Shown in pieces: positions 12,114-63,393 of a stretch of 64,000 nucleotides of DNA (within the stretch, counting starts at the first letter, position 1; each line of letters starts with the position of its first letter). The notes below the pieces were generated by a model. It saw only the letters and a program-made list of their open reading frames with translations. It made no database searches and was not told where the DNA came from. Source of the stretch: Macrostomum lignano (Eukaryota); NCBI GenBank assembly GCA_002269645.1, contig NIVC01000672.1:62001-126000 (forward strand). The letters run 5' to 3'. Position numbers and translations under genes: made by a program.

Positions 12114-13353
12114 TCAAGCTCTCTGTTGCAGCTGCTGCACCTGCTGCTGGAGCTGCTGCACCTGCTGCTGCAGCTGCTCGACGCTCCTTGTCCGCTCGTC
12201 CAGTCCGCTCAGCAGAGTCCGCAGCTGCGAGACGCCTCCGAACCTGTCAGCCAGCTGCTCGAGCTCCATGGTGCTGTGAGCCCAGTTCGCCACGTTGACC
12301 TGCAGCTTCTTGAACTGCTCGAAGACGCTGCCGACTCGCCGCTTCACATCGGCCACCTCGCGACCGTCGGCGGTAGTGGCGGTGGGAGCTGCGGCACCGA
12401 CAGAGGACTGCGGGACCGCAGCTGCTGGAAATGAACAATTAAACATTATTGCAATAGCGACCAACAAAACATTCGCATCCAACCACCTTAATGTATTAGC
12501 GCACATTGATCTTTGCTATTATTCAACAGAAAAGCTTACCAGAATTCGATGGAACAACAGCTGCCTGCTTGAGCTTCGAGTCCATGAGCTCAAGGTGAGA
12601 GTCCATGCTGTCCCTGTAGTGCCTCTCCAGATCGGACCTGCTTACCATCTCCCCGCAGCCCAGGTGAGAGTACTTGCATTCTACCGTTCTCTCGGGACAC
12701 TCCGACAGGTGAGCAACATATCCCCGCCTGTCCATCGGTGTGCTCCGCTCCGAGCAGTGAGGACAGCGAGCTGAGAATCTCGGACAGCACACATCGGACT
12801 GCAGATTCCTGTGACTGGTCTCCATCTCGCTGTGTGTGACCAGCTGAGAGCACAGGTCGCAGGTCTCCTTCCTGTGGCGACACTCGCTGCTGGTGTGTCG
12901 CTGCATGTCCTTCTTCAGGATGAGCTCTTTGCACTGCTCACAGCGGAGTGAGTGCCAGTCGCAGCTCTGTTGCACATGCTGGTCCATGCGAGCCCATTCG
13001 AGTTGGACAGAGCAGCCGGCGTCGCAGTTCGGACAGCGGACTCGCAGCTTGGCGACCTCGCGTCTCGTCGCTATGTCGGGATAGCAGGTAGCTCGGCTCA
13101 CCTCGGTCTCGACCCCGCCGCCAACGTCCTCCTCCGAGTGGCGGTCTCTGAGTGTGCAGGCCTCGGTGTGTCCGGGACAGGGCCGCTTCTCCACCTCGTG
13201 CAGCAAGCCGGTGACGCAGGCGTGGCACAGGCGGCACCCGTGCAGAGTCTGTTGGGCGTTGAAGAGCGGCTTGGAGCAGCTGCTGCACTGCAGGTGAGCC
13301 GGCAGATCGGAGACCGGTCGGGCTCCCGACACTCGCTCTGGAAGTTCTGACAT
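12114..13353 (-). CDS. TRAF-like copy 2: RING + ZF + coiled coil, no MATH (exons 13353-12540, 12424-12114; 374 aa)
   Basis: ATG 13353; donor TCT G|GTAAGC; acceptor catttccag|CA; ends LQQRA*; AATAAA on the minus strand at 11835-11840. Confidence 0.88.
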
Positions 13354-15656
13354 GACGCATGTGTCCTGCTGAAAAGTGAGAAGTCTTTTATTAAAAACTT
13401 TAGGCGTTTTTGTGAAAGGGTGTGGCTCTGTTTTTGTCATCAAACGCTGCAATGTTCCTTTTTAGCTGCGTGCTGAGTCCATAAAACACGGAAGCTTGCT
13501 CATGACTCATTTTGGCACAAAAATTTTTAGAGATTCGTTTAGGTAAAATTGGCCTGTTACTAGTGTCATGCCATTGTCCATAAGGCACAGCCTGGTGTAA
13601 TGACAAACTCAACTGGCCATTATTTCAGCTTTAGCAGGCGTTTGAACCATAAACGATTAGTTAAATATGCATTTGTTAACTGACATATGAGAATAATCGC
13701 AAACAGTCTACATGGAATTCTGGAATACACTGAAAAAACGGTTCGTTCAGTCGTCGACAAGAAGATATTCCAATTAATAAGCGGGGCTGTTTGACGAGAT
13801 GCACCAGCCATAGTTGCTTGACAAGACAAATAGCTTTTACTCGTACTACCCACTTTCCTGATTTCTTGCAAGACGCAAACGAAATCGGCACTCATCACAG
13901 TGTTGTCTATGGTCAAACTAAGACACACATCTCAGTCATCTATGGGTAAAATAACTCTCAAAACAGCCAATTAAAGCGTGATAAAAAGTGTGAAATAATG
14001 ACCGCTTCCGGCACGCTGAAATAATGGCCGTCAGACTACGCTATGCTGAAATAATGGCCTCTATGTGCCATAGACTTTGTTTGGCCATTATTTCAGTCCC
14101 TTACCTACTACGCAATCTACCATTATGTCCAATATTCATAAAACTTTTACCGTTTTCACCAGACTTCATCGAACAAAAAAACTTAATTACTTTTTAAGGC
14201 GTTAAAAACATTTGTCACACAATCGTTTTTGTTCTCAATACGAAATGTTGACGCGTCTTGTGGGAATTATTTCTATAATCTTAATCTAACAGTTTCGAAG
14301 TTGCAAAATCAGGGGTAGCTACAACTAATTAAAACTTTGAGATGAAGGCTTATGCTGGAAGATTTGCTCACCTGTCGGATTTGAGAAGCAACTGATAGGC
14401 CTAAAAGAGAGCCGGAAGGGTCAAATTAAAGGCTGTTGTGACCTCTGCTGTTCTGGCAATTGACAACGACTATTATAAATTGCCTAATAAAAATTCTAAA
14501 TTCTTTAACAAAGTCGTTTTTGTTCTAGTTAACCTAGTTAAATCCAAGACACGAAAGTCCGCAGTTGCGCGGCATAAAAGATAAAAAAGTATATAAAATA
14601 AAGACATTGAGTAATAAGACTATTGGCCGCAAAAACAATGAAAAAGCCAACCAAGCTCATTTAAGCAAAGAAATCAAGTTTCACTGTTTCACTGAAGAAA
14701 ACTTCCAAACTGCAGTGTATTTCTTTACTCAAAATGAAGCAAGTACGTCGTACATGAGACTCGCGAGCAATTGATAGATAAAATTTATAGCCTAATTCTA
14801 GTCAGTTACCTGATTAAGATTATTGTGACTTTAATAAGAAACTGGTTTGTTTCTAAACTACGATTGATTATAATCGTAGTTTTAAATGCTCAAATTTAAA
14901 AAAGCCTATCTTCTGCCAACTCAAACAGCCGCAGGATTCTTTTAAACAGCAAGCGAGCTTTTCAATGTCAAACGTAAGTTCTACGCTTTCCACAACTGGC
15001 TTAAATAGTCGTAATGGGTGAGAGAGAATAATCACGTGCTGTGCTATGTGCTTCTGTTTATAGATAACGCGCAGATATGTGAATTGTCTAAAAATAGAAA
15101 CAGATGTCATTCTGGGCTAAAAATATCCATGAGCATTAGATAGCTCATTCTGTAGCTGGGGCTCACTCTGTATCTTGGACTCATTCTGTAGCTGTCGCCC
15201 CCCCCCTCTGTAGCTGGCGCTGGCCCCTCTGTGCTGTGTACTCGGCTCTATGTGAGGGTCTGCAGCATCTCAACAATAACTAGCTGTATACCAATAAATT
15301 TCAGACTGTATCTGACCTACTTAAAGCAGATATAAACGTGTACAAGTTTTTCTTTCTAGTCAAAAGTGAAGAAAGCGAAAGAAATGTACATTTCTGTCAC
15401 TGTAGCTAATAGTGTACTCACAGCACTGCCGTACATTTAATTTTAGACGTTCAAATTAAAGAGAACTTCATCCAAAATGAAAATTTTCCGCAGCGATTCC
15501 ACGGCAGTTCCGTGGAAAGAAATTTCTGTCGGCTACAGACAGGTGAGTAAAATCACAAACGCTCGACGAGCAAAGGCAGTTCCAAACGGCAGAAGCACAT
15601 ATGAAAAAGAGGATACTACGTGGGTACTGCGATCATTACTAAAGCAGTTGAGCACC

Positions 15657-18600
15657 ATGTCAGGACTTCCTCAGCGAGTGTCGGCAGCCCGACCGGTCTC
15701 CGATCTGCCGGCTCACCTGCAGTGCAGCAGCTGCTCCAAGCCGCTCTTCAACGCCCGACAGACTCCGCACGGGTGCCGCCTGTGCCACGCCTGCGTCACC
15801 GGCCTGCTGCACGAGGTGGAGAAGCGGCCCTGTCCCGGACACACCGAGGCCTGCACACTCAGAGACCACCACTCGGAGGAGGACGTCGGCGAAGTCGAGG
15901 TCGAGGTGAGCCAGGCTACCTGCTTTCCCGACATGGCGACGAGACGCGAGGTCGCCAAGCTGCGAGTCCGCTGTCCGAACTGCGACGCCGGCTGCTCTGT
16001 CCAACTCGAATGGGCTCGCATGGACCAGCATGTGCAACAGAGCTGCGACTGGCACTCACTCCGCTGTGAGCAGTGCAAAGAGCTCATTCTGAAGAAGGAC
16101 ATGCAGCGACACACCAGCAGCGAGTGTCGCCACAGGAAGGAGACCTGCGACCTGTGCTCTCAGCTAGTCACACACAGCGAGATGGAGACCAGTCACAGGA
16201 ATCTGCAGTCCGATGTGTGCTGTCCGAGATTCTCAGCTCGCTGTCCTCACTGCTCGGAGCGGAGCACACCGATGGACAGGCGGGGATATGTTGCTCACCT
16301 GTCGGAGTGTCCCGAGAGACCGGTAGAGTGCAAGTACTCTCACCTGGGCTGCAGGGCGATGGTGCGCAGGTCCGATCTGGAGAGGCACTACAGGGAAAGC
16401 ATGGACTCTCACCTTGAGCTCATGGACTCGAAACTGAAGCAGACAGCGATATCTCATTCGAATTCCGGTATGTCAGTATTGTGTCGGGTTAATGGATTTT
16501 TTTGTTGAGACAAATTTTATGCACTGCTACTCCAAAAATTTTATTTTTTGGTCAGCTGTTTTCAGTGGCCGATGGCAGTTTATGGACGCTCCTGTGGGCG
16601 ACCGAAGCCGACACGACGCACAGCTGGCCTCCGTGCCGCGAGACCCCGGCCAAGATCCGGTAGAATCGCCTGTGAGCTCTGAATCGTTCCTTCACAGGCC
16701 GCATGCGTTGGGTGGAGCTCTGCAGTTGCAGAATGTGAGCTGCTTTGCGATTTTTTAACTCATTTGCATCTTTATTCATTTAGACGAAAGTCCTGTCACT
16801 GAGCCCATTCCACATTTTTAGCCAATTTGCAACTCCATTGCTGCCGACTCGCCTGTCCGAATGCTGGGCAGGCCGAAACAGCTGCTGTCCGAGCTGGTGT
16901 TCAGTCGGGGCCATGCTGGCCGAGTCACGTCTGCCTGCTCTCTAGACGGGCGGCAGATTTTTGTTTCGGGAGGCGCGGACGGAATCGCGGTGCTGTGGCA
17001 CCTCGGCTCAATGCGTCTCCAGAGTCGAGTCCGGGCCCCTGCGAGTTGGGGTTCAATCACCTGTCTGGTGTCTCCGGCATCTGACATTCTGTTGGCCGGC
17101 TGGGAGAATCTGAATGGACTCGTGCGACTCCGGTGCCCGGAGGGGTATCTGTGCGACACTGATGCTGAGCTGGAGCACCTCTTGAGCACTGGACAGGCGG
17201 AGCTGCTTCAAGGCAACTCACCTGTGGCGGCCATGTGCACAGTTCCCGAATCTGCTGAGGTCATTGTCGCCCTCACCAACAGAAGCCTCGCACTGGTGCC
17301 AGCCGAAGGAGGTCTTCAGCCGCTGGTTGGGCTCACCGGTTTCGACCCTCTGGCTGGCCCGCCGGTGTTTTTGCGGATTCTGGAGCCCGGGTGGCTGCTG
17401 GCATGCCAGCTCAGTAGCCCTGTGCTCCGCTCCGCTCAGCTGCACACGGCTCAGGATGGCAGGATGGCTGTCAGCGGCTGGCGAACCTTCCAGTGCTTCG
17501 ACGAGATGGCGGCGGATGCTTCTCCAGTGATTCGGGCGTGCGCTGCAGGCTGCGGTCCCGGAGTTGCCATTGTGGCGTTTCGGTGCCAAAGTCGCAATCG
17601 GATCGCCATCGTTAAACTCGGCTCCGATGCGAAAATTCATCCCGTCTTGACGGGTTTTATGGTGAATGTGTTTCTTTTTAATATTTGATGTCTGAATTTC
17701 TAACCTTATAATATTGCTTCAAGTTGCTGCATGCTGAAGTTCAATTCTGAAACTGAGGATGTTTTCCATTTTTCACCAAATTCACCCAGAACTTCCTCAA
17801 GATTTCACCCCGATCTCACCCCGATCTCACCCCGATCTCACCCCGATCTCACCCCGATCTCACACCGATCTCACCCTGATCTCACCCCGATCTCACCCCG
17901 ATCTCACCCCGATCTCACCCCGATCTCACCCCGATCTCACCCCGATCTCACCCCGATCTCATCCCGATTTCATCACGATCTCACCCCGATTTCATCCCGA
18001 TCTCACACTGATCTCACCTCGATCTCACCCCGATCTCACCCCGGTTTCACCCTGATCTCACACCGAACTCACCCCGATCTCACCCCGATCTCATCCCGAT
18101 CTCACCCCGATCTCACCCCGATCTCACCCCGATCTCACCCCGATCTCACCCCGATCTCACCCCGATCTCACCCCGATTTCATCCCGATCTCACACTGATC
18201 TCACCTCGATCTCACCCCGATCTCACCCCGGTTTCACCCTGATCTCACACCGAACTCACCCCGATCTCACCCCGATCTCATCCCGATCTCACCCCGATCT
18301 CACCCCGATCTCACCCCGATCTCACCCCGATCTCATCACGATCTCACCCCGATCTCACCCCGATTTCATCCCGATCTCACACCGATCTCACCTCGATCTC
18401 ACCCCGATCTCACCCCGGTTTCACCCTGATCTCACACCGAACTCACCCCGATCTCCCTGCGATTTGTCTCCCTTTCCGCAGTGCCACACCCGGCCGATAC
18501 GAGCCATCAGCCTGCTGACGAGCGACCTCACGGGCGCCCTGCCGCTCCTGGCCACGGCCTCTGCTCAAGGGAAAGTCAGCGTTTGGCGCATGCAGAGCGG

Positions 18601-25856: not shown

Positions 25857-27145
25857 TCAGGCTCGATGTCGCTGCAGCTCCTGCACCTGCTGCTGGAGCT
25901 GCAGCACCTGTTGCTGCAGCTGCTCGACGCTCCTCGTCCGCTCGTCCAGTCCGCTCAGCAGAGTCCGCAGCTGCTCGACGCTCCTCGTCCGCTCGTCCAG
26001 TCCGCTCAGCAGAGTCCGCAGCTGCGAGACGCCTCCGAACCTGTCAGCCAGCTGCTCGAGCTCCATGGTGCTGTGAGCCCAGTTCGCCACGTTGACCTGC
26101 AGCTTCTTGAACTGCTCGAAGACGCTGCCGACTCGCCGCTTCACGTCGACCACATCGCGTCCATCGGTGGCTGTGGTGGCAGGAACTCCGGTACCGACAG
26201 AAGAATGCGGGACCGCGGATGCTAAAAGTTTAAAAAAATTAATTTAATATCCGAGAATACGTTCGTAGCCGCTTTTACTGCATAACCACTTTACTGGTTT
26301 AGAAAGCAAATCTTACCAGGACTCTGCTGAGCTATCGCTGTCTGCTTCAGTTTCGAGTCCATGAGCTCAAGGTGAGAGTCCATGCTTTCCTTGTAGTGCC
26401 TCTCCACATCGGACCTGCGCACCATCGCCCTGCAGCCCAGGTGAGAATACTTGCACTCTACCGGTCTCTCGGGACACTCCGACAGGTGAGCAACATATCC
26501 CCGCCTGTCCATCGGTGTGCTCCGCTCCGAGCAGTGAGGACAACGAGCTGAGAATCTCGGACAGCACACATCGGACTGCAGATTCCTGTGACTGGTCTCC
26601 ATCTCGCTGTGTGTGACCAGCTGAGAGCACAGGTCGCAGGTCTCCTTCCTGTGGCGACACTCGCTGCTGGTGTGTCGCTGCATGTCCTTCTTCAGGATGA
26701 GCTCTTTGCACTGCTCACAGCGGAGTGAGTGCCAGTCGCAGCTCTGTTGCACATGCTGGTCCATGCGAGCCCATTCGAGTTGGACAGAGCAGCCGGCGTC
26801 GCAGTTCGGACAGCGGACTCGCAGCTTGGCGACCTCGCGTCTCGTCGCCATGTCGGGAAAGCAGGTAGCATGGCTCACCTCGGTCTTGACCTCGCCGCCG
26901 CTGCCACCGCCGCCAACGTCCTCCTCCGAGTGGTGGTCTCTGAGTGTGCAGGCCTCGGTGTGTCCGGGACAGGGCCGCTTCTCCACCTCGTGCAGCAGGC
27001 CGGTGACGCAGGCCTGGCACAGGCGGCACCCGTGCGGAGTCTGTCGGGCGTTGAAGAGCGGCTTGGAGCAGCTGCTGCACTGCAGGTGGGCCGGCAGATC
27101 GGAGACTGGCCGGGCTCCCGACACACTCGAAGGCAGCTCGGACAT
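25857..27145 (-). CDS. TRAF-like copy 4: RING + ZF + coiled coil (exons 27145-26317, 26221-25857; 397 aa)
   Basis: Donor CCT G|GTAAGA; acceptor cttttag|CA; the coiled coil carries a 51-bp internal duplication (LRTLLSGLDERTRSVEQ twice); ends LQRHRA*. Confidence 0.88.
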
Positions 27146-29837
27146 TGCGGTTGAAGCAGTGAACTGCAAGTTCTTTCTATTCCTTGGTAAGTCCTATATA
27201 GCCATTTTCTAGTTAAGAGGGTTCGTTGCTTTACAGGGTTCTACCTGAACTCTTTAGAACTGCCTTTGCATTTCAACTGTACTGCTGCTCTTACTTCTGA
27301 ATAGGCTTTTTTCATAGCGCGTGCGTTGCTTCCCTGTTAAAGGCTGACTGTGCTGCTTCTATTTTTAGGCTTTATGATTTAAGGTCCTGGTTTACGATGG
27401 TATTGCTCAATTTTCGTTTTTCATTTTTTCCGTCTCATCAGTGACTACTTATGGCTATTTGCTTTAATCTATATCAGATACTCCAAGTCTGTAGACTTTA
27501 ACTATGATTCTTTCGTTTTTAAGAGTCAGAGTTTGTAATATTTATATCGTGAATATCATCTGTCCGGAACAAATTTGTGCATAAATTTGTAGACAAATGC
27601 TTCGGGTTGAAAGTTGATGCTCATTGTATGTTGCTCATGCACACTGAGCAGCTTGAGTAGTGCGATGCAGTTCTTGGCCTAGTACTCAACCTCTGTCAGT
27701 TCCTTTCGAGAGTGAGCATCTCTTGTAATTTCTATAAATAGCTCAACGATCTCGGCAATTTCTCTGAAAAGCTTAATGGTAAAACGTAGTCAATTCTATT
27801 TATGTATTCTAGTAACCTACTTTTAGTAGTGTATGAATTCCAGTAATAAAGTCTTGTCTGGGCAAAATTAAAGACAACGAATGAGGGCAAAGAATGAAGG
27901 CAACAGATGAAAAATTCTGCTTTGTTCGAATTTTTGTATTGTCAATTTCATAGTTTTACCCCTTTAACACTTAAATATTCCTGATACATAATAAAGAATT
28001 GCCTATGAATTTTTCAAGTTCTATTTACATAGGATTTATATAGGAGTGTAGAAGCATAAAAGATATTAAAATGTTATTTTTCTTATATCATTCACAATAC
28101 TCTTCAGTGATATTTCAATAATACACAATGAGCCTTGCAAACTTTATTTAGAATACTTGCCCAACTTCTATTTGAAAAACTGGGCTGCGCAGCCACAGCA
28201 CACTGCATGTTCAGTTCACTCTCTCTATCTACCTGTAGATGTAAAATCAAATACTCATAATGCACTACTGTACAGCTCAGGGTCCTGTGTACTCATCTCT
28301 ATGTGAGGGAATGCTCTCAACTATACTATACCAGCTGTATGCAAAAATGTCATACGCTCGTAGATTGTAGCTGATCATGTTTTAAGCAGATTTACAAGTG
28401 TGTGCAAGTTTTTCTCTTGCACAAGTGTACATTTCCATCACTGTAGCTAATGTTGCGTATTGCTATGACTGCTGCAAAGTATAGACTTTTACTTCGGAAA
28501 TAGTCTATGGTTTATGCGACGCGATACGGTACTCTCCCTTTGTTTGCTAAGCTTCGAATCTTTTCATTTAGGAGCACAAGCCCCTAGGAGCGCGCTGCCG
28601 CTAAAATATAGCTTAATTTCAAACTACCATAATTCATTGACTTGGCGTTTTTCAAACAACACAGCTAATAGTGTACTTGCAGCACCGCAGTACATTTAAT
28701 TTTAGACATACATAAATAGGAGAACTTTGGAGTCTTTGCAACTTCCCCAGGAGTTGTGTTTGATGTTTCCAAAAATAGATCACACGCCGTGATACAAATA
28801 GCACACGGCTCGATCCAGGTTGTTTTGTAGGCAGTGCACCAAGCAGAATGCATTTTAGCTTGAATCTGGCGCGCTCCTAAATACTGTATACTTAGTGATC
28901 TAGAACAAAGGCTACCACGCTCTTTACTGCAGCTTCATGGTGACTGTGAGACATAGTCCACAGTCGGGGAGGAATTCTTATTACGTTGGTAGAAACACAG
29001 AATGTAGAAACTATAGACAGTCAAAAAACTTGATTTTCTATAGCCATACCAGCATGATAGCAATACACCGATGCGGGTAGTACATGCTGTTTTGTGTCTG
29101 CTCATAGGAGTGACGCCGCAATCTCATTTGGCTAAGGAGAAGTACCTTGGTTTCGAAAATGTACTACCCCTAAGCCAGGGACAACTTAAACTACCGGGAC
29201 GCGAAACAAGCCAAATCATGGCGAAAAAAGTTGAGGGCTCGTTTGTTTGTCTATGGCTGTGCAAAATTTAATGTGTTTTGCTTTGTGATACGCGCCTTCT
29301 TCGTTCTAGTACGTCTAGTAAGTAAGTCGACTGCTAAGGGGCTTCTATTATTTTTAACAAGCTCTAAGAATCATGCGCCTGTAGTTAAGAGACAAAGCCA
29401 TGCCACGAAAGTGCAGCATCTGGGGATGCAGATCAAACTACAATTCTGAAACTAAACGAACAAGATGCGCTGCTATTGACGAAAATGAATTGTTTAACTT
29501 GTCCCTGCCCTAAGCATAAATTTTTATATTTTTAATAGATAAAATTATTCAGAACTAAAAAGTCTAAACTTTCAGAAAACTTCAAGAGAAGAGACCAAAC
29601 AGATTGAGTAATAATTGAGTAATAAACCAGTACCTTATATAAAGCCTAAAAATAGAAGCAGTATGAGCAGCCCTTAACAAGGAAGCAACGCACGCGCTAT
29701 AAAAAGCCCTATTTCAACTGCAGTGCATAGGGAGTTCAGGTAGAACCCTGTAAAGCAACTGACCCTCTAAACTAGAAAATGGCTATATAGGACTTAACAA
29801 GGAATAGAAGAACTTGCAGTTCACTGCTTCAACCGCC

Positions 29838-32800
29838 ATGTCCGAGCTGCCTTCGAGTGTGTCGGCAGCCCGGCCAGTCTCCACTGTGCCGGCTCACCTG
29901 CAGTGCAGCAGCTGCTCCAAGCCGCTCTTCAACGCCCGACAGACTCCGCACGGGTGCCGCCTGTGCCAGGCCTGCGTCACCGGCCTGCTGCACGAGGTGG
30001 AGAAGCGGCCCTGTCCCGGACACACCGAGGCCTGTACACTCAGAGACCACCACTCGGAGGAGGACGCTAGCGGCCAGGTCGAGGTCGAGGTGAGCCAGGC
30101 TACCTGCTTTACCGACATGGCGACGAGACGCGAGGTCGCCAAGCTGCGAGTCCGCTGTCCGAACTGCGACGCCGGCTGCTCTGTCCAACTCGAATGGGCT
30201 CGCATGGACCAGCATGTGCAACAGAGCTGCGACTGGCACTCACTCCGCTGTGAGCAGTGCAAAGAGCTCATCCTGAAGAAGGACATGCAGCGACACACCA
30301 GCAGCGAGTGTCGCCACAGGAAGGAGACCTGCGACCTGTGCTCTCAGCTAGTCACACACAGCGAGATGGAGACCAGTCACAGGAATCTGCAGTCCGATGT
30401 GTGCTGTCCGAGATTCTCAGCTCGCTGTCCTCACTGCTCGGAGCGGAGCACACCGATGGACAGGCGGGGATATGTTGCTCACCTGTCGGAGTGTCCCGAG
30501 AGACCGGTAGAGTGCAAGTACTCTCACCTGGGCTGCAGGGCGATGGTGCGCAGGTCCGATCTGGAGAGGCACTACAGGGAAAGCATGGACTCTCACCTTG
30601 AGCTCATGGACTCGAAACTGAAGCAGACAGCGATATCTCATTCGAATTCCGGTATGTCAGTATTGTGTCGGGTTAATGGATTTTTTTGTTGAGACAAATT
30701 TTATGCACTGCTACTCCAAAAATTTTATTTTTTGGTCAGCTGTTTTCAGTGGCCGACGGCAGTTTATGGACGCTCCTGTGGGCGACCGAAGCCGACACGA
30801 CGCACAGCTGGCCTCCGTGCCGCGAGACCCCGGCCAAGATCCGGTAGAATCGCCTGTGAGCTCTGAATCGTTCCTTCACAGGCCGCATGCGTTGGGTGGA
30901 GCTCTGCAGTTGCAGAATGTGAGCTGCTTTGCGATTTTTTAACTCATTTGCATCTTTATTCATTTAGACGAAAGTCCTGTCACTGAGCCCATTCCACATT
31001 TTTAGCCAATTTGCAACTCCATCGCTGCCGACTCGCCTGTCCGAATGCTGGGCAGGCCGAAACAGCTGCTGTCCGAGCTGGTGTTCAGTCGGGGCCATGC
31101 TGGCCGAGTCACGTCTGCCTGCTCTCTAGACGGGCGGCAGATTTTTGTTTCGGGAGGCGCGGACGGAATCGCGGTGCTATGGCAGATCGACTCAATGCGT
31201 CTCCAGAATCGTGTCCGGGCCCCTGCGAGTTGGGGTTCAATCACCTGCCTGGTGTCTCCGGCATCTGACATTCTGTTGGCCGGCTGGGAGAATCTGAATG
31301 GACTCGTGCGACTCCGGTGCCCGGAGGGGTACCTGTGCGACACTGATGCTGAGCTGGAGCACCTCTTGAGCGCTGGACAGGCGGACCTGCTTCAAGGCAA
31401 CTCACCTGTGGCGGCCATGTGCACAGTTCCCGAATCTGCTGAGGTCATTGTCGCCCTCACCAACAGAAGCCTCGCACTGGTGCCAGCCGAAGGAGGTCTT
31501 CAGCCGCTGGTTGGGCTCACCGGTTTCGACCCTCTGGCTGGCCCGCCGATGTTTTTGCGGATTCTCGAGCCCGGGTGGCTGCTGGCCCGCCAGCTCAGTA
31601 GCCCTGTGCTCCGCTCCGCTCAGCTGCACACGGCTCAGGACGGCAGGATGGCTGTCAGCGGCTGGCGAACCTTCCAGTGCTTCGACGGGACGGCGACCGA
31701 TGATCCTCCAGTGATTCAGGCGTGCGCTGCAGGCTGCGGTCCCGGGGTTGCCATTGTGGCGTTTCGGTGCCAAAGTCGCAATCGGATCGCCATCGTTAAA
31801 CTCGGCCCCGATGCCAAAATTCATCCCGTCTTGACGGATTTTATGGTGAATCGTGTCTGTTTAATATCTGATGTCTGAATTTCTAACCTAAAATTATTGT
31901 TTCAAGTTGCTGCAGGCTAAAGTTCAATTCTGAAACTGGGGATGTCTTCCATTTCTCCCCAAATTCACCCAGAATTTCCTCAAGATTTCACCCCGATCTC
32001 ACCCCGATCTCATCACGATCTTACCCTGATCTCACTCCGATCTCACACCGATCTCACCCCGATCTCAACACGATCTCAACCCGATCTCAGCCCGATCTCA
32101 CTAATATCTCATCCCGATCTCACTACGATCTCACTACGATCTCACCCGATCTCACCCCGATCTCAACACGATCTCACCCCGATCTCAGCCTGATCTCACT
32201 AAGATCTCATCCCGATCTCACTACGATCTCACTACGATCCCACTACGATCTCACCCGATCTCACTCCGATCTCACCCGATATCACCCGATCTCACCCCGA
32301 TCTCAACCCGATCTCACCCCGATCTCACACCGATCTCACACCGATCTCACACCGATCTCACACCGATCCCACACCGATCTCACCCCGATCTCACCTAGAT
32401 CTCACTCCGATCTCATTCCGGTTTCAACCCGATCTCACCCAGATTTTTCGATCAAAACACCTGGAAGCATTTGTTTCCCTTTCCGCAGTGCCACACCCGG
32501 CCGATTCGAGTCATCAGCCTGCTGACGAGCGACCTCACGGGCGCCCTGCCGCTCCTGGCCACGGCCTCTGCTCAAGGGAAAGTCAGCATTTGGCGCATGC
32601 AGAGCGGGACAAATCGGCTGGCTGAGGTCAGGCATCGTGCAGTGATTTTTCATTTCGCTTCTAATCAAACTTCTCGCCAATTTCTAACCCGCCCCTGCCA
32701 CTCAGGTTTCTCACTTCGAGCACGGCCACGAGGTTACCACCCTGGGGCTGCACCTCACAGCCACCGACCGGCCTCTGCTGCTTGTCGGGGATGCTGGCGG

Positions 32801-43486: not shown

Positions 43487-43496
43487 CTGTGAAATT

Positions 43497-46594: not shown

Positions 46595-47815
46595 TCAGGC
46601 TCGATGTCGCTGCAGCTGCTGCACCTGCTGCTGGAGCTCCTGCACCTGCTGCTGCAGCTGCTCGACGCTCCTCGTCCGCTCGTCCAGTCCGCTCAGCAGA
46701 GTCCGCAGCTGCGAGACGCCTCCGAACCTGTCAGCCAGCTGCTCGAGCTCCATGGTGCTGTGAGCCCAGTTCGCCACGTTGACCTGCAGCTTCTTGAACT
46801 GCTCGAAGACGCTGCCGACTCGCCGCTTCACGTCGACCACATCGCGTCCATCGGTGGCTGTGGCGGCAAGAGCTCCGGCACCGACAGAAGACTGCGGGAC
46901 CGCAGATACTAAAAGTATAAATTTTTTTTTAATATCCGAAAATACGCTCGTAGCAGCTTTTTCTGGTTAACCAATTTACTGATTTGGAAAGCAAATCTCA
47001 CCAGGACTCTGCTGAGCTATCGCTGCCTGCTTCAGTTTCGAGTCCATGAGCTCAAGGTGAGAGTCCATGCTTTCTCTGTAGTGCCTCTCCAGATCGGACC
47101 TGCGCACCATCGCCCTGCAGCCCAGGTGAGAGTACTTGCACTCTACCGGTCTCTCGGGACACTCCGACAGGTGAGCAACATATCCCCGCCTGTCCATCGG
47201 CGTGCTCCGCTCCGAGCAGTGAGGACAGCGAGCTGAGAATCTCGGACAGCACACATCGGACTGCAGATTCCTGTGACTGGTCTCCATTTCGCTGTGTGTG
47301 ACCAGCTGAGAGCACAGGTCGCAGGTCTCCTTCCTGTGGCGACACTCGCTGCTGGTGTGTCGCTGCATGTCCTTCTTCAGGATGAGCTCTTTGCACTGCT
47401 CACAGCGGAGTGAGTGCCAGTCGCAGCTCTGTTGCACATGCTGGTCCATGCGAGCCCATTCGAGTTGGACAGAGCAGCCGGCGTCGCAGTTCGGACAGCG
47501 GACTCGCAGCTTGGCGACCTCGCGTCTCGTCGCCATGTCGGGAAAGCAGGTAGCCTGGCTCACCTCGACCTCGACCTGGCCGCTAGCGTCCTCCTCCGAG
47601 TGGTGGTCTCTGAGTGTACAGGCCTCGGTGTGTCCGGGACAGGGCCGCTTCTCCACCTCGTGCAGCAGGCCGGTGACGCAGGCCTGGCACAGGCGGCACC
47701 CGTGCGGAGTCTGTCGGGCGTTGAAGAGCGGCTTGGAGCAGCTGCTGCACTGCAGGTGAGCCGGCAGATCGGAGACCGGCCGGGCAGCCACGACACTCGA
47801 AGGCAGCTCGGACAT
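46595..47815 (-). CDS. TRAF-like copy 6: RING + ZF + coiled coil (exons 47815-47002, 46908-46595; 375 aa)
   Basis: Donor CCT G|GTGAGA; acceptor cttttag|TA; TGA TGA followed immediately by AATAAA (46587-46592). Confidence 0.9.
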
Positions 47816-48354
47816 GGCGGTTGAAGCAGTGAACTGTTTTCAAACGTTTTCAATTGTCAGTCTTAAATATGTTGCCTTCACTTTACTAGGGTTACTGCTA
47901 ATGCCACAGGGTTCTACCTAAACTCTTCAGTACTGTCTACTGTACTGCAGCTCTTCCTCTGAATAAGGTTGTTCATATCGCGTGCGTTGCTTCCTTGTTA
48001 AAGGCTTCTGTGATTCTGTTTATAGGCTTTATGAGTTACGGTTCTCGTTTTATTACTATTACTCAATTTTCGTTTTTCATTTTTCAATTTACTCACACAT
48101 CACTGACTACTCACCGTTAGTGTAGAAGAAAGCTTTAGTTTTAAGTAGAAGGTTTCATGTTTCAGGAAGAACTTTGATCAATTTCGCTTCTTTTACGTTG
48201 CTGATGTACACTGAGTAGCGTGAGCAGTGCGATGCATTTGTTGGCCATGTACTCACTCAGCTTCTGATAGTTTTTTTTGAGATTGAGCATCTCATTGTAA
48301 TTTCTATAAATAGCTCAGGCAATTTTTATAAACGGCTTGAAGGTAAAACGTAGT

Positions 48355-50675: not shown

Positions 50676-50934
50676 TTTTAGACGTTTTGTAAAAAAGGAA
50701 AACTTCATCTAAAATGAAAACGCCTATAAACAGAATCACAGGCAGCCTTTATCAAGGAAGCAACGCACGCCATATGAACAACCTTATAAGAGGAAATAAC
50801 TGCAGTACAATAGACAGTACTGAAGAGTTCAGGTAGAACCCTGTGGCATTAGCAGTAACCCTAGTAAAGTGAAGGCAGCCTATTTAGAACTGACAATTAA
50901 AAACGTTTGAAAACAGTTCACTGCTTCAACCGCC

Positions 50935-53402
50935 ATGTCCGAGCTGCCTTCGAGTGTGACGGCCGCACGGCCGGTCTCCGATCTGCCGGCCCACCTGCAG
51001 TGCAGCAGCTGCTCCAAGCCGCTCTTCAACGCCCGACAGACTCCGCACGGGTGCCGCCTGTGCCACGCCTGCGTCACCGGCCTGCTGCACGAGGTGGAGA
51101 AGCGGCCCTGTCCCGGAAACACCGAGGCCTGCACACTCAGAGACCACCACTCGGAGGAGGACGCTGGCGGCGAGGTCGAGGTCGAGGTGAGCCAGGCTAC
51201 CTGCTTTCCCGACATGGCGACGAGACGCGAGGTCGCCAAGCTGCGAGTCCGCTGTCCGAACTGCGACGCCGGCTGCTCTGTCCAACTCGAATGGGCTCGC
51301 ATGGACCAGCATGTGCAACAGAGCTGCGACTGGCACTCACTCCGCTGTGAGCAGTGCAAAGAGCTCATCCTGAAGAAGGACATGCAGCGACACACCAGCA
51401 GCGAGTGTCGCCACAGGAAGGAGACCTGCGACCTGTGCTCTCAGCTGGTCACACACAGCGAGATGGAGACCAGTCACAGGAATCTGCAGTCCGATGTGTG
51501 CTGTCCGAGATTCTCAGCTCGCTGTCCTCACTGCTCGGAGCGGAGCACACCGATGGACAGGCGGGGATATGTTGCTCACCTGTCGGAGTGTCCCGAGAGA
51601 CCTCGTGGCGCTTCGATCGCACCTCAGCGCCAAATTGCCTCTTCTCAACGGCTGCAGCGAGCTATTGGTAAGTGAAACATTTTTAAATACAAATTTATGT
51701 CATGTGTGTTTCTGGCTTCAATTTTCTGAAAAGTAGCAAACTATTCAACTTCACGGATTCTCAGGCAACTCTGGGAGCCGACCAGCGCGTGACTCCGCCA
51801 CGGACAGCAGCAGAATTTTGTTTGACGAAAGGCTGACTGATTCGCCGCAGGAGCCTGTCCAGGATCCAGCAGCGCCTTCAGCGAATTTTATTGCAACCGG
51901 CGGGTCGATTGCGACGCAACATTTTCCTCTTCCTTTTGGTGGAGCCGAACAAGTGCATGTTGTAAGACTTGCAAGTACACTGTGTTCGTAGCTTAGCCAG
52001 TACATTGTGTTAGCTTAGCAAGTACACTGTGTTAGCTTAGCAAGTGTAGTTTGTTAGCTTAGCAAGTGCAGTGTGTTAGCTTTTTCGCCTTCAACTTGCA
52101 GCCCGTTCGCGACCCCGAGTCGTCTGACCGCCCAGTGCAGTTGCTGCATCCTTCAAACTTGCCACCCGCTGAGCTGGGCTTCAGCCGAGGTCACAGCAGT
52201 CGAGTCGCCGCAGTCTGCCGTCTTGGAAACATTTCTTTTGTTGCCACTGGCGGCGCGGACGGGTCCGTGCTGCTGTGGCACCTGGACTCCATGTGTCTGC
52301 AGCATCGAATGCTGGCGCCATCAGCTTGGGGAGCCGTGACCCATCTGAACTCGCCGACGGGTAGCCTTCTGTTGCTCAGCTGGCAGCAGCGGACAGGCCT
52401 GGTCAGAATCCGCTGTGGGCAGCTCCTACTTCAAGGCATTGAGTCGCTTCTGCGTGACATGTTGAATGCCGGAGTCGCAGAGCTGCTGGACAGCCACTCG
52501 CCCGTGACAGCCCTCTGCCCCATCCCTGAGAATCACGCGGCAGTCGTAGGCTTTGAAGATTCCACTTTGGCTTTGGTGGCAGCGCAGGGCAGTTTCGTCG
52601 CCCTTCGGCACCAAAGTGCCGGCGACCTGGATGCGACGGCTGGGCCGCCGGTGCTTCTGCGGATCGTGGAGCCGGGCTACATGCTCTGCTTGCAGCTCGG
52701 CAACCCCAGGCTTTACTTGGCGACGCTGCGCACCGCGTTGCCGGGTCCTGCCATTGTTGGAGGCTGGCGAGCTTCAGACCGACTCGACTTGCTGGACGAA
52801 GCTGCGGCCTTGCTGCAGGCATTCGCTGCCGGCGACTTGCCCGGAGAAGCCTGTCTGATATTCCCTTGTGGGATACCCGGGCGGATCTCGGTGCTCAGAG
52901 TGGACTCCAACATGCAGCTCTGCCCAGTGGTCAGCAGATTTCTGGTAAGCTTTTTGAACAGCTGCAGAGAATTTCAACGTCTTGAAAATCTGACCTCAGA
53001 AGAAATATTTGATCGCACTGTGCTCACCGCCCGTTGCAGTGCCACGCGCAGCCAATCACCGCCCTCTGCCGGCTGACGGACGATCTGAGCGGCGCCCTGC
53101 CGTTCCTCGCCACGGCCTCGGCCGGCGGGGAAGTCAGCGTCTGGCGCATGCAGGCCGGAGCTGCACTGAACCAGCTCGCTGAGGTGCGGCTTAAAATCTC
53201 CCTCATGAGCTTCTATCGCATTGTGTTTTTTATTATCAGAATATTTCGAACCCTGCAATTTTTGCAGGTGTCGCACTTCAAGCACAGCTGCGAAGTTACT
53301 ACGATGAAGCTGCTGTCATTCGATGCTCAGCTGCATCTGCTTGTCGGAGATGCTCGGGGCAACGTTTTCTGCCTGAAGTTGCCAGTTGGTTCAAGCTTGT
53401 AA
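50935..53402 (+). CDS. TRAF-like copy 7: RING + ZF (last finger lost) + divergent WD40-like propeller (exons 50935-51667, 51765-51961, 52102-52944, 53040-53183, 53268-53402; 683 aa)
   Basis: ATT G|GTAAGT, tctcag|GC, GTT|GTAAGA, ttgcag|CCC, CTG|GTAAGC, tgcag|TGC, GAG|GTGCGG, ttgcag|GTG; phases 1,0,0,0; open joined frame. Confidence 0.83.
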
Positions 53403-55700: not shown

Positions 55701-55807
55701 TCGCAATCATCGACTGCACGAACGCAATTCCAAAAAAATGGATAAAATTGTAGAATGCGATTCCAAATCTGAATCTAATGCATAATGGTATAACAAATAT
55801 CAATTAT

Positions 55808-56435: not shown

Positions 56436-56489
56436 TCGGAACTGGGAATGTAGTGGAGGTGAGTCAAATTTCAGTTACAACAGCATTTT

Positions 56490-56580: not shown

Positions 56581-58168
56581 TAGCTTCAAGTGTAGGTTCC
56601 GTCTTTTTGATTTGTTCTATTGGCGATTGGACACACGCTGAAAACGTCAAAGTCTTGGACAAGAATCGCTATCGTTTAGCAGGAGTTGTAGCAAAAATGA
56701 CTCGAGCAACTCAGGGGCGACTCTTGTAACGACTCAAGCGACTGCAATGCGGCTTAGAGGAGACTCTTGAATCTCAAGCGCATCAAGTAAGTTGTTGAAT
56801 CGTATGAGTCGCGAGAAAGTTGTCCAAGAGTCGTATTCACGTAACTTATTACTATATCAAGTAGACCAAACAGATTTTATATAAACGCAAAATGTAACGC
56901 AGACGCGCCGGCCCCAGAGTCAGTATAAAAGCGCCACAGAGTCACTTGCATCACACACTAAAGGCATTTCAGGGTCGCAGACAATCAAACACATCAGATT
57001 GAGCCTTAAGTGACTCTTTGATGACTTTTCGGCGAAGTTTGACAGTGACATCTCACCGTTTTAGAGTCATTTAGAGTCACCTCTTTCCTATTTTACCTGT
57101 GTTACCTGCAACGGCTCTGAAACAACTTTGGGGCGTGACTCTGGGGCGCTTCTTAGCCTTGGTACAGTTTTTTATCGGGAACGGCCTGTTAAGGAGCTGA
57201 GAGTAGAAGTGAATTTTCGATGTCGATTTTAATTAATCATAAAAGCGCTCGAAGCAAACCTTTTTTAGTCAAACTGACGAACTAGTCTAGCCAAATCGCA
57301 AAATTTTTCCTGTATACTAATGAAACTTGCTAGACGAAAAGATTTAACTTTTAGTGCGTACTATTTAAAGTGCATAGGCTTTTAATAAAGTGCAGCTGTA
57401 GTACCTTGTAGCTTTTCCATATAGAACGAAGCTGCATTAGGTACTGTGGAAATTTATAATTATAGCAGTGGTGAATCAACTTTTTATTCTAGTAGAGAAA
57501 TACAGGAAGGCTACAAAGCAGTACCGAACAAGCCGTTCCTCGTGGTAGTCATGTGTTACCATGACCTGTACGCCAATTCAGTGCACTTTTGATGATGCTT
57601 TCATAGCGAAGAATATTGGATAAATTTCACAACAACTGAGACATAAATCAATAAGCATGCAAAAACAGCAAAAATTCGAACGCTTAATTTAGCGAATTTA
57701 CAGCGATCTTAGCTCGCAATAGGCTTAATATTAGGAAGCGCGAGTAATAATATCATTATCAAGTTCCAAGTTCAGGCAGCAGAATCCACTGGCTCAGAGT
57801 TCCGCAGTTCGAGTAGCTGAAAAATGGTAATGCCTCTCTACTTTTTAGAAGCGTTTAACAACTCACTAGAACATAAAAATTTGAAGGCTCACAAGAATTA
57901 CTAGCTGTTCGGCAGGTGACTCGATCCTGGCGCCACGTGGGCAATTTCGAAATTGTTCAAGACTCTGGAAAGCCGCTACAGTCCTCACAGACGCTGACAA
58001 ATGATTAAAAAACTTTTCCGCATTATAAAATCTCAGTTTAAAAAACATTAGGGAAGTCGGCCTGCCTCATCTTCTGCAACAAAGACTCACTTGAACTCAA
58101 CGACATACCTTGGGGCTGTTGTAATGAAAGTCTAAAATATTTTTTATTATAAAAAAGTTCTTATTTAC

Positions 58169-58999
58169 CTGTACTCCGCTGAGCTATCACGGCCTGTCAG
58201 AGCCTCGAGTCCATGAGCGCAAGGTGAGAGTCCACGCTGTCGATGTGGTGCCTCTCCAGATCGGACCTGCGCACCATCGCCCTGCAGCCCAGGTGAGAGT
58301 ACTTGCACTCTACCGGTCTCTCGGGACACTCCGACAGGTGAGCAACGTAAGCACGTCAATCCAGTTTTTTTCTACTGTTGCAGTGAGGACAGCGAGCAGA
58401 GTATCTCGGACAGCACACATCGGACTGCAGATTCCTGTGACTGGTCTCCATCTCGCTGTGTGTGACCAGCTGAGAGCACAGGTCGCAGGTCTCCTTCCTG
58501 TGGCGACACTCGCTGCTGGTGTGTCGCTGCATGTCCTTCTTCAGAATGAGCTCTTTGCACTGCTCACAGCGGAGTGAGTGCCAGTCGCAGCTCTGTTGCA
58601 CATGCTGGTCCATGCGAGCCCATTCGAGTTGGACAGAGCAGCCGGCGTCGCAGTTCGGACAGCGGACTCGCAGCTTGGCGACCTCGCGTCTCGTCGCCAT
58701 GTCGGGAAAGCAGGTAGCCTGGCTCACCTCGATCTCGACCTCGCCGCCGCCAACGTCCTCCTCCGAGTGGTGGTCTCTGAGTGTGCAGGCCTCGGTGTGT
58801 CCGGGACAGGGCCGCTTCTCCACCTCGTGCAGCAGGCCGGTGACGCAGGCCTGGCACAGGCGGCACCCATGCGGAGTCTGTCGGGCGTTGAAGAGTTGAA
58901 GGCGTTGAACTGGGCGTTGGAGCAGCAGCTGCACTGCAGGTGAGCCGGCAGATCGGAGACCGGCCGGGCTTCCGACACACTCGAAGGCAGCTCGGACAT
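58169..58999 (-). pseudogene. TRAF-like copy 8 exon 1 (pseudogene)
   Basis: Frameshifting micro-duplication in the RING (ttcaacgcc repeats, about 58890-58920); in-frame TGA at 58356-58358 and at about 58198-58200; phase-1 donor ACA G|GTAAAT retained. Confidence 0.88.
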
Positions 59000-59330: not shown

Positions 59331-59619
59331 TAAGGTCTATTCGATTGATTTCCTTTTGTTCGATCCAGTTGTTTAGCAGTTCTGCAGTGAGTTTTTTATG
59401 GCTATTGTGGAAGAATTGAGGGACCTTGGAGATAAAAGTATACGGAGGAACAAGTTTCATTGTTTCCACGGATTTTTTGTTGAACTGACTTTTTGTATTC
59501 AAAGTGGTTTTCTTCAAATGAAGCAAACCTTTTCCATCTGCTTACAAAGATTTTGCCTAAAGTTTTCTGCGGATTCAGTTTTGTCTTTTCCTAATCTTGG
59601 GTATCAAGTGGTAGGTGGC

Positions 59620-60157
59620 TCTGCAAATCTTTCTACCTGTGAGTGGCTCTGCAACTCTTTCTACCTGTGAGTGGCTCTGCAACTCTTTCTACCTGTGAGT
59701 GGCTCTGCAACTCTTTCTACCTGTGAGTGGCTCTGCAACTCTTTCTACCTGTGAGTGGCTCTGCAAATCTTTCTACCTGTGAGTGGCTCTGCAACTCTTT
59801 CTACCTGTGAGTGGCTCTGCAACTCTTTCTACCTGTGAGTGGCTCTGCAACTCTTTCTACCTGTGAGTGGCTCTGCAACTCTTTCTACCTGTGAGTGGCT
59901 CTGCAAATCTTTCTACCTGTGAGTGGCTCTGCAAATCTTTCTACCTGTGAGTGGCTCTGCAAATCTTTCTACCTGTGAGTGGCTCTGCAAATCTTTCTAC
60001 CTGTGAGTGGCTCTGCAACTCTTTCTACCTGTGAGTGGCTCTGCAACTCTTTCTACCTGTGAGTGGCTCTGCAACTCTTTCTACCTGTGAGTGGCTCTGC
60101 AAATCTTTCTACCTGTGAGTGGCTCTGCAACTCTTTCTACCCGTGAGTGGCTCTGCT
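59620..60157. repeat. 28-bp minisatellite (gtgagtggctctgcaactctttctacct)n, about 19 copies
   Basis: Direct reading. Confidence 0.95.
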
Positions 60158-62140: not shown

Positions 62141-63393
62141 ATGTCCCAGTTGGAACTTCCCCAAAGAGTGTCGGTCGCCAGGCCAGTCTCCAATCTGCCG
62201 GCTCACCTGCAGTGCAGCAGCTGCTCCAAGCCGCTCTTCAACGCCCGACAGACTCCGCACGGGTGCCGCCTGTGCCAGGCCTGCGTCACCGGCCTGCTGC
62301 ACGAGGTGGAGAAGCGGCCCTGTCCCGGACACACCGAGGCCTGCACACTCAGAGACCACCACTCGGAGGAGGACGTTGGCGGCGGCGAGGTCGAGATCGA
62401 GGTGAGCCAGGCTACCTGCTTTCCCGACATGGCGACGAGACGCGAGGTCGCCAAGCTGCGAGTCCGCTGTCCGAACTGCGACGCCGGCTGCTCTGTCCAA
62501 CTCGAATGGGCTCGCATGGACCAGCATGTGCAACATAGCTGCGACTGGCACTCACTCCGCTGTGAGCAGTGCAAAGAGCTCATTCTGAAGAAGGACATGC
62601 AGCGACACACCAGCAGCGAGTGTCGCCACAGGAAGGAGACCTGCGACCTGTGCTCTCAGCTGGTCACACACAGCGAGATGGAGACCAGTCACAGGAATCT
62701 GCAGTCCGATGTGTGCTGTCCGAGATTCTCAGCTCGCTGTCCTCACTGCTCGGAGCGGAGCACACCGATGGACAGGCGGGGATATGTTGCTCACCTGTCG
62801 GAGTGCCCCGAGAGACCGGTAGAGTGCAAGTACTCTCACCTGGGCTGCAGGGCGATGGTGCGCAGGTCCGATCTGGAGAGGCACTGCAAGGACAGCGTGG
62901 ACTCTCACCTTGAGCTCATGGACTCGTTTATGCAGTTCATTGTCTTTCGTATCTTCATACTTCGGTCTCATGGTGAGTTTTCTGTTGGGAGTAATAAAGT
63001 GTCTGCTTTAGGAATTTATTAGTCTATTTCGACTCTTCATAGTACTACAGTGTGTACCCAATCGCTGCGCTGCTACATTGATTCTAGAACCATCAGCTGA
63101 TGAGAGTCCGCAGCGGTCCCATCGCTATTTAGTCACATCGGCTCAGGATTCCATCACCAGTGCCGCAGTGTCTGTTGATCAGCTGCTTTATTCGGTGGGT
63201 TGCAGTTTTGCATGCAGTTTTTATGTTGAATATCCTATATACTAAAAATGGTCTGTCTTTGATTTCTAAAAAACGGCCCACGCTGTCTTTTCAGCTGTCC
63301 GAGCTGCAAACAGCCGACTCTCCTGTGCGACTCTACTCCACACCGGTGCTACCCATGTGCGAGCTCCAGCTTCATCCTTTGCAGTTTTCTTAG
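62141..63393 (+). CDS. TRAF-like copy 9, WD40-class but truncated (exons 62141-62972, 63088-63194, 63295-63393)
   Basis: Phase-1 donor CAT G|GTGAGT; phase 1-0 linker exon (ttctag|AA...TCG|GTGGGT); exon 3 LSELQTADSPVRLYSTP..CEL matches AADSPVRMLGRP..SEL of the other WD exons, then stops at TAG. Confidence 0.6.

Follow-up and report, generated by a model that had tools for sequence, protein, structure and literature searches.

Background

Do genes that stand head to head in a neat series of pairs act together, or do they stand where duplication happened to leave them? The question is raised by a stretch of 64,000 bases of Macrostomum lignano DNA, called the window here (contig NIVC01000672.1, bases 62001-126000 in plus orientation, assembly GCA_002269645.1, also named Mlig_3_7). 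It contains a cluster of TRAF-like genes that share a first exon, which encodes a RING-like domain and TRAF-type zinc fingers (the RING-ZF exon). In the two-exon genes of the coiled-coil (CC) class, this is followed by a coiled-coil exon. In the five-exon genes of the WD class, it is followed by a linker exon and by WD40-like exons.

A sequence-only reading of the window had described four divergent pairs of a CC and a WD gene, and proposed that each pair is a co-regulated two-component module. The description stands in part. For the pairing itself we consider another account likely: the cluster would be a lineage-specific, tandemly amplified family of TRAF6-like RING/zf-TRAF genes, assembled by an inverted duplication with capture of exons, by tandem duplication and by gene conversion. 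Best supported, as far as comparison of sequences goes, is that the family is young and species-specific.

Data and annotation

Gene models were built from splice sites, and database proteins agree with them in part. Exon copies within the window were found by self-comparison. Bases 1-15298 of locus L001 agree with window positions 15298-1 at 100% identity. Joined to L002, the window makes up 96 kb, and cluster-wide counts of copies and of CC genes refer to these 96 kb. The survey of pairing covered ~117 kb of the M. lignano genome.

The Mlig_3_7 annotation was built from a genome-guided transcriptome, i.e. it is transcript-derived; the assembly is redundant, the animal is a neopolyploid, and trans-splicing affects many of its mRNAs (PMC5730564). 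The NCBI annotation of this cluster should not be trusted copy by copy. Models PAA78654-PAA78656 (L001/L002/L003), for example, are chimeras across two or three near-identical copies. Literature searches found no description of Macrostomum TRAF genes, of the four BOX15 gene identifiers or of a layout like this one, which agrees with what the sequence-only reading had supposed.

Head-to-head pairs

The pairs are where they had been reported. Their start codons are at 13353(-)/15657(+), 27145(-)/29838(+), 47815(-)/50935(+) and 58999(-)/62141(+), with spacers of 2303, 2692, 3119 and 3141 bp between them. Three pairs are intact: in each, a minus-strand CC gene (374-397 amino acids, aa) faces a plus-strand WD gene (683-709 aa). 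The seven models (CC0-CC3, WD1-WD3) are open reading frames (ORFs), and every intron is GT-AG.

4058..5298, minus strand: CC0, exons 5298-4470 and 4389-4058, 386 aa; unpaired, and beyond the range of the reported pairs
12114..13353, minus strand: CC1 (pair 1), exons 13353-12540 and 12424-12114, 374 aa
15657..18857, plus strand: WD1, exon 15657-16467, linker 16556-16734, WD40-like exons 16822-17661, 18482-18619 and 18699-18857, 708 aa
25857..27145, minus strand: CC2 (pair 2), exons 27145-26317 and 26221-25857, 397 aa
29838..32864, plus strand: WD2, exons 29838-30651, 30740-30918, 31006-31845, 32489-32626 and 32706-32864, 709 aa
46595..47815, minus strand: CC3 (pair 3), exons 47815-47002 and 46908-46595, 375 aa
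50935..53402, plus strand: WD3, exons 50935-51667, 51765-51961, 52102-52944, 53040-53183 and 53268-53402, 683 aa

Pair 4 has decayed on both sides, as had been read from the letters.

58150..58999, minus strand: pseudogene of the RING-ZF exon; a 17-bp insertion at 58916 shifts the frame within the RING, and in-frame stops follow
62141..63022, plus strand: RING-ZF-only ORF of 293 aa; similarity to other copies stops at 62926

The sole coiled-coil trace on the minus side is a faint remnant at 55605-55703 (E 1.5e-4), ~2.5 kb downstream. On the plus side no linker or WD exon was found between the ORF and the end of the window, and the 293-aa ORF has no database record. Given a pseudogene and a RING-ZF-only ORF, the CC and WD classes are not assignable in this pair. 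The claim that a CC gene opposes a WD gene in every pair therefore holds for pairs 1-3 and not for pair 4.

Database proteins bear out much of the CC class. UniProt model P0002 agrees with CC0 exon 1 and with its junction to the coiled-coil exon, and P0160 does the same for CC3. The transcript-derived NCBI models P0004, P0157 and P0158 include the full coiled-coil exon. P0158 has the exon 1 and the coiled-coil exon of CC1, bar one Ala at a tandem CAGCAG acceptor; its 3' tail fits the coiled-coil exon of CC0 and not that of CC1, so it is a mapping chimera. P0003 is a chimera too: it unites the first exon of CC0 with a segment characteristic of a different copy and with the divergent coiled-coil exon 12 kb off.

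The coiled coil itself is read from the sequence: exon 2 carries a V-x2-L-x3 heptad run, VEQLQQQVQQLQQQVQQLQ, and its matches to coiled-coil families are all sub-threshold. In CC2 it carries an internal duplication of 17 aa. An internal splice donor at KKLQ is used by all UniProt models, and the transcript-derived NCBI models read through it. The ratio of nonsynonymous to synonymous divergence (dN/dS) of the coiled-coil exon is mostly 0.16-0.48.

No MATH domain was matched in the gene models, in the scanned ORFs, in database models P0001 and P0003, or in two orphan 255-aa ORFs (D255) described further on. The sequence-only reading was right to call these genes MATH-less.

The shared first exon

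The RING-ZF exon is ~0.8 kb long. Nine copies are within the window, with start codons at 5298(-), 13353(-), 15657(+), 27145(-), 29838(+), 47815(-), 50935(+), 58999(-) and 62141(+). The 96 kb hold 14 copies, at 92-99.8% nucleotide identity, so the earlier description of nearly identical RING and zinc-finger regions across the classes is borne out. A tree of the 14 copies tracks physical proximity and not class, and no alignment column separates CC from WD copies. When exon 1 of pair 1 is compared with that of pairs 2 and 3, partners are united by 8-9 sites and classes by 0-4. In both classes the exon ends with a phase-1 donor. That the exon has no class-specific site is one of the points that speak for a working two-component module.

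What this exon encodes can be said with more confidence for its zinc fingers than for its RING. The zf-TRAF family PF02176 matches at E 2.6e-11, and its 44.5 bits exceed the cut-off of 27. Among solved structures, RING-ZF fragments of TRAF6 and TRAF5 come closest (E 1e-10 to 3e-09), and the alignment with zinc fingers 1-3 of TRAF6 (fragments 3hcs and 5vo0) reaches E 1e-10. Among database proteins, the RING/zinc-finger ORFs match those of M. lignano only.

A phmmer search aligns residues 17-64 to the TRAF6 RING; the score there is just ~12 bits, and even at E <= 10 none of the Pfam RING models matches exon 1. The TRAF6 alignment leaves none of the eight metal-ligand positions empty (C, C, H, C, C, C, C, H), and relative to TRAF6 the third and fourth ligands have changed places: H-x-C in place of C-x-H. 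The Ile of the TRAF6 CPIC motif, which we take from the TRAF6/Ubc13 literature to be an E2 contact, aligns with a Ser in CSSC.

Between the RING and the first zinc finger, all copies carry an acidic glycine-rich stretch at codons ~74-90 (15876-15926, for example). It comes as EEDVGGGGSGGDVETEVSH, EEDASGQVEVEVSQ, EEDVGEVEVEVSQ and others, and is the sole indel-rich and variable part of an otherwise homogenised exon.

Synonymous divergence (dS) of exon 1 is 0.04-0.10. When WD1 or WD2 is compared with WD3, dS reaches 1.09-1.17 in the WD exons and 0.04-0.09 in exon 1. This gap of more than 12-fold shows that gene conversion homogenises exon 1, and that the 3' modules go on diverging under moderate constraint.

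Is the WD class real?

A possible objection concerns the WD genes themselves. In such a reading the WD class is a decaying or artefactual by-product: its first exons are dead copies, and its WD exons belong to a separate (possibly trans-spliced) gene or to none, or else the tandem copies are homeologous sequence that was wrongly assembled. The UniProt models would suit this. P0005 agrees with exons 3-5 of WD2 and their junctions, and P0005, P0006 and P0156 all reproduce the exon 3-5 junctions of the class, but they are 5'-partial, begin inside exon 3 and lack the RING-ZF part. Frequent trans-splicing and a highly redundant assembly (PMC5730564) would suit it as well. Copies do decay, as pair 4 shows, and exon 1 of WD3 lacks the last zinc-finger segment, after ECPERP.

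Against this, three WD genes keep full frames of 683-709 aa over five exons, with GT-AG introns, matched phases and a linker in a conserved position. The linker exon of WD1-WD3 encodes 59-66 aa without a heptad pattern, and the WD40-like exons come directly after it. The WD part of WD3 is only 44-47% identical to those of WD1 and WD2. Even so dN/dS of the WD exons is 0.43-0.57, and it is 0.43-0.44 for WD1 or WD2 against WD3, over a dS of ~1.1. Exons in the cluster have a GC content of 0.61-0.65 and introns and spacers one of 0.32-0.40, which is a sharp contrast.

There is also an NCBI entry to consider. A zf-TRAF product of 684 aa is listed on the plus strand from 15465, at the 5' end of WD1; at that length it exceeds exon 1 alone, and the longest single ORF there has only 343 aa. 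Finally, the tandem units described below differ by a retroelement insertion and by unique spacers, which would be hard to obtain from a mis-join. Taken together, we regard a by-product or artefact as very unlikely.

The 5' region of WD1 (15465-15656, plus strand) is unlike that of WD2 and WD3. It has an in-frame ATG upstream at 15477, and a strong donor CAG/GTGAGT at 15541/15542. With the NCBI gene start at 15465, this suggests that WD1 has an alternative first exon or a longer N-terminus. Intron 3 of WD1 holds an 11-bp minisatellite.

The nature of the WD40-like domain is less clear-cut. One repeat of the region scores 25.6 bits, where the Pfam cut-off for WD40 is 27. A profile search of 1.84 billion representative proteins returned only M. 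lignano P0006 below E 1e-30. Other library matches were generic multi-WD40 proteins on the first repeat (profile positions 9-47), and matches in the PDB were equally generic. Among the 1.84 billion, then, no specific relative of the domain was found outside M. lignano. AlphaFold2, given a three-sequence alignment, produced a beta-rich model with a mean confidence (pLDDT) of 39, which is unusable.

Spacers and promoter arms

Spacer 4 has nothing in common with the other spacers. Spacers 2 and 3 align colinearly at ~78%.

13354..15656, no strand: spacer 1, 2303 bp, GC 0.39; its likeness to spacers 2 and 3 is confined to a ~250-bp block on the WD side

The first exons of pairs 2 and 3 are alike in inverted orientation, and this likeness continues for 215-250 bp upstream of the start codons, with conserved blocks and a TATA-like motif.

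26328..27394, minus strand: left arm of the pair-2 inverted repeat, exon 1 and ~250 bp upstream with TATA-like motif GGCTATATAGG; 95.9% identity over 925 bp
29623..30640, plus strand: right arm of the pair-2 inverted repeat, promoter-proximal sequence and WD2 exon 1
47148..48030, minus strand: left arm of the pair-3 inverted repeat, exon 1 and 215 bp upstream; 96.6% over 886 bp
50718..51602, plus strand: right arm of the pair-3 inverted repeat, found by self-comparison

The promoter arms (~230 bp) are 87-95% identical between partners, against 62-73% between pairs. Their informative sites split 38:1:0 between grouping by partner, grouping by class and the third grouping. This partner-specific likeness means that pairs 2 and 3 each behave as a small palindrome, the arms of which are promoter plus exon 1.

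No single short bidirectional promoter common to partners was found in these spacers of 2.3-3.1 kb. Every gene of pairs 2 and 3 has a separate copy of the proximal sequence, at a distance of 2.2-2.7 kb from that of its partner. The genes of pair 1 share no promoter arm and nothing else upstream. For the co-regulation that had been proposed, a shared promoter is thus not supported, while the inverted copies in pairs 2 and 3 make similar regulation of those partners plausible.

The arms invite a bolder thought. Conversion might maintain these small palindromes in such a way that both partners are co-expressed and present one dimerisation surface, which would make their products obligate hetero-oligomeric ubiquitin ligases, with a WD40-like recognition subunit in a CC scaffold. 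We think this quite unlikely; if true, it would give animals a TRAF-based equivalent to paired immune receptors.

Cluster layout and the origin of the pairs

From left to right, the 96 kb hold three CC genes on the plus strand, then on the minus strand a divergent CC gene and a copy at -266, CC0 and CC1, and then WD1, CC2, WD2, CC3, WD3, the pseudogene and the truncated copy. The five CC genes just left of the window are arranged in tandem or convergently. Only CC1, CC2 and CC3 face a WD gene, which leaves 6 of 9 CC genes without such a partner. The left part of the cluster is matched, at 93-97% identity, by a second contig, NIVC01002933.1 (L004), which has three CC copies and no WD gene.

Window positions 15.7-27.4 kb recur at 29.9-48.1 kb, in patches of 82-98% identity. 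The repeated unit of 14-21 kb consists of a WD gene (plus strand), a gene with an ALK/LTK-type glycine-rich domain (minus strand) and a CC gene (minus strand). CC0 and CC1 are in a separate sub-array, in which each CC gene is followed by an orphan 255-aa ORF. Pair 1 is therefore the junction between a (D255-CC) array and a (WD-glycine-rich-CC) array. Given the duplication of the whole unit and the colinear spacers, pairs 2 and 3 come from one ancestral pair.

The intact pairs thus go back to a single ancestral arrangement rather than to repeated independent pairings. With the pairs being copies or array boundaries within one tandem cluster, descent accounts for their seeming more frequent than chance. 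CC/WD pairing was not found at independent loci or in other species, within the ~117 kb surveyed and with the WD profile run against the 1.84 billion proteins. As independently assembled modules, the pairs did not hold up: their arrangement looks largely like a by-product of duplication, an outcome that the sequence-only reading had itself named as counting against its idea.

The functional module can now be judged. It holds that partners are co-expressed, that the WD40-like protein recognises a target, that a RING/ZF heterodimer joins it to a CC protein which oligomerises, and that the result is an active ligase or signalling assembly, whose pairing is under selection. TRAF6 RING-ZF fragments dimerise, and the RING-ZF region aligns to these fragments, 3hcs and 5vo0. 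The inverted promoter arms of pairs 2 and 3 are near-identical (38:1:0), both classes are intact and under purifying selection, and a CC-minus, WD-plus layout with a homologous spacer is common to pairs whose WD exons have reached a dS of ~1.1. Yet the pairing has a single evolutionary origin, the WD partner is missing for the six CC genes mentioned and for the three on the second contig, the partners of pair 1 have no promoter sequence in common, pair 4 has decayed, and the promoters are separate copies. The WD40-like domain is in no other species among the proteins searched, and adjacency in a tandem array requires no selection. On balance, a selected module is unlikely.

Proposed history and function

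In the account that we prefer, one 5' module (exon 1, with RING-like part, TRAF zinc fingers and phase-1 donor) would have been joined to various 3' modules. These would be the coiled-coil exon of the common class, possibly a coiled coil plus a 255-aa domain, and the linker with a beta-rich domain of WD40-like type. A CC gene would have had its promoter and exon 1 duplicated in inverted orientation beside WD40-like exons, which amounts to exon capture. The resulting unit of ~14-21 kb (WD gene, glycine-rich-domain gene, CC gene) would then have been duplicated in tandem. As the comparisons show, gene conversion keeps exon 1 near-identical throughout the cluster, and the promoter-proximal arms are homogenised within pairs 2 and 3. 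With such a history of duplication and conversion, the head-to-head geometry would mainly be a structural legacy. A consequence would be partners with similar promoters and identical N-terminal RING/ZF surfaces.

Judging from the family, the products probably serve stress or innate-immune signalling as ubiquitin ligases or adaptors. The dN/dS values place both classes under purifying selection. The CC class would oligomerise and the WD class would bind a target through its propeller, while docking to receptors by way of a MATH domain would be open to neither. Homo- and heterodimerisation through the identical RING/ZF region is plausible by analogy with TRAF6 RING-ZF1 dimers. A partnership of sensor and helper is, on the same kind of comparison, not favoured.

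Several points weigh against this history or parts of it. The splice from exon 1 through the linker to the WD exons is a prediction of the gene models, the UniProt WD models being 5'-partial. Since the NCBI models P0003, P0004 and P0158 of the cluster are chimeric, the 684-aa model may be so too. The WD40 assignment, which stays provisional, draws on one repeat below the cut-off and on generic WD40 matches. E3 activity is uncertain, given the missing Pfam RING match and the Ser at the E2-contact position.

The duplication history has its own difficulties. The likeness of promoters within pairs could stem from independent inverted duplications, one for each pair. The ~78% identity of the spacers exceeds what the saturated dS of the WD3 exons predicts, which makes the history a mosaic. 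Lastly, with a neopolyploid genome and a redundant assembly, the tandem might conceivably be a mis-join of homeologous copies.

Other elements in the cluster

The orphan ORFs of the (D255-CC) array are the following:

1439..2209, minus strand: D255a, 255-aa ORF downstream of CC0, with phase-0 acceptor cccag/GAC ATG
7218..7976, minus strand: D255b, paralogue of D255a, downstream of CC1

They share 41% aa identity at a dS of 1.2, and their dN/dS of 0.46 indicates that they are constrained. In UniProt P0001, the KKLQ donor inside the coiled-coil exon is spliced to an in-phase acceptor of D255a; no in-phase acceptor for this donor was found at D255b. From these splice sites, D255 may be an alternative C-terminus of the neighbouring CC genes. 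The link is weak, because the transcript-derived NCBI models read through the KKLQ donor.

D255 has no Pfam match and no database relatives. A word-indexed search for homologues of the D255 alignment gave no match and missed even P0001, in which part of D255 is present, so this is a limit of the tool. The AlphaFold2 model (pLDDT 63) has, at low confidence, two beta-alpha-beta-beta units and then a beta-sandwich, and a fold search with it returned no MATH structure. This search, by Foldseek, offered likenesses to beta-sandwiches of the actinoporin and aegerolysin kind (E ~2e-3, TM 0.3-0.6), which are too weak to build on and were rejected.

Copies of the glycine-rich-domain gene are at 20388-21756 and 42116-43484, both on the minus strand, between the WD and CC genes of each unit. 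They are 96% identical and match PF12810 above the cut-off (E 5e-09); a cysteine-containing exon without a Pfam match precedes the domain. A stand-alone glycine-rich-domain protein is unusual in an invertebrate.

The second tandem unit has a retroelement insertion of ~8 kb at ~32950-40975 (plus strand). It carries fragmented Ty3/gypsy-type ORFs in jumbled order: protease, integrase zinc-binding and C-terminal domains, reverse transcriptase and RNase H. Nested within it is a PIF/Harbinger-type DDE_Tnp_4 transposase ORF (36258-36851).

Long minisatellites, with periods of 11, 16, 22, 28, 40 and 43 bp, occupy introns and spacers of the cluster:

9991-11724, minisatellite
17801-18455, minisatellite
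19330-19949, minisatellite
22149-22467, minisatellite
24284-25231, minisatellite
31984-32444, minisatellite
43497-44148, minisatellite
48354-48902, minisatellite
55811-56434, minisatellite
59615-60156, minisatellite

The 11-bp arrays yield long spurious ORFs in several frames. One such ORF of 401 aa (43089-44294) looks like a protein of 'RETAERQQRDS' repeats. It crosses an 11-bp minisatellite that is open in all frames, its repeat part is probably non-coding, and it was set aside.

On the homeologous contig NIVC01002933.1, a single-exon ORF of 564 aa (15268-16962, plus strand), with a cysteine-rich middle and two hydrophobic segments, is found among the TRAF-like copies; in window numbering it also occurs at -4302 to -1422.

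Comparison with known systems

Expansions of TRAF genes are not new. They have been described for flatworms and molluscs (PMC7586133), among them planarian MATH/TRAF genes (PMC6109357) and oyster TRAF6 (PMC4346834). Like these, the present cluster consists of many recent TRAF-like adaptor paralogues in a lophotrochozoan. The planarian and oyster expansions were however catalogued via their MATH domains, and the Macrostomum family, lacking this domain, would escape such screens. Surveys based on MATH would overlook it, and it therefore widens the picture of adaptor-gene expansion in flatworms. That TRAF genes expand is already known; what the literature searched does not describe are TRAF genes of Macrostomum and an arrangement such as this.

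Like TRAF2, TRAF3, TRAF5 and TRAF6, the genes of the cluster encode a RING-like N-terminus with several zinc fingers of TRAF type behind it, to which the common class adds a putative heptad coiled coil. It differs from them in having no MATH/TRAF-C domain, no Pfam RING match, swapped ligands 3 and 4, and a Ser for the E2-contact Ile. Unlike them, it is a species-specific tandem array with a first exon homogenised by conversion.

TRAF7 is made up of RING, zf-TRAF, coiled coil and WD40 repeats, without MATH (PMC7179693, PMC7586133). The WD class similarly has a RING-like domain and TRAF zinc fingers before a WD40-like C-terminus. It lacks the coiled coil between zinc fingers and WD region, however, and just one of its repeats comes near the Pfam WD40 threshold. 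Orthology with TRAF7 was considered and rejected: the WD genes have the exon 1 of the neighbouring CC genes and no specific relative outside M. lignano, so that their architecture looks like local exon shuffling.

Plants have head-to-head pairs of sensor and helper immune receptors of the nucleotide-binding leucine-rich-repeat type, like RGA4/RGA5 and RRS1/RPS4. As in the cluster, the two genes of such a pair are related and divergently oriented, with one type of domain in common and another in which they differ. The cluster is different in that its partners share no short promoter, its pairing has a single origin, and most members of one class are unpaired.

Another parallel is found in the palindromes of the primate Y chromosome, where gene conversion runs from arm to arm. 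Pairs 2 and 3 resemble these, with inverted arms of ~0.9-1.1 kb around a unique spacer of 2.2-2.7 kb, and a likeness between arms that is greater inside one pair than across pairs. These arms are very short, though, and each is the 5' end of a gene whose 3' part is outside the palindrome and of a different class.

On present evidence this is an ordinary though tidy story of a multigene family, and not a new kind of immune system. It does make a clear and compact case of how new architectures may arise: promoter and first exon are copied in inverted orientation, different 3' exons of the same intron phase are captured, and conversion then keeps the 5' part alike while the 3' parts diverge. M. 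lignano is amenable to RNA interference and transgenesis, so whether the two classes act jointly is directly testable.

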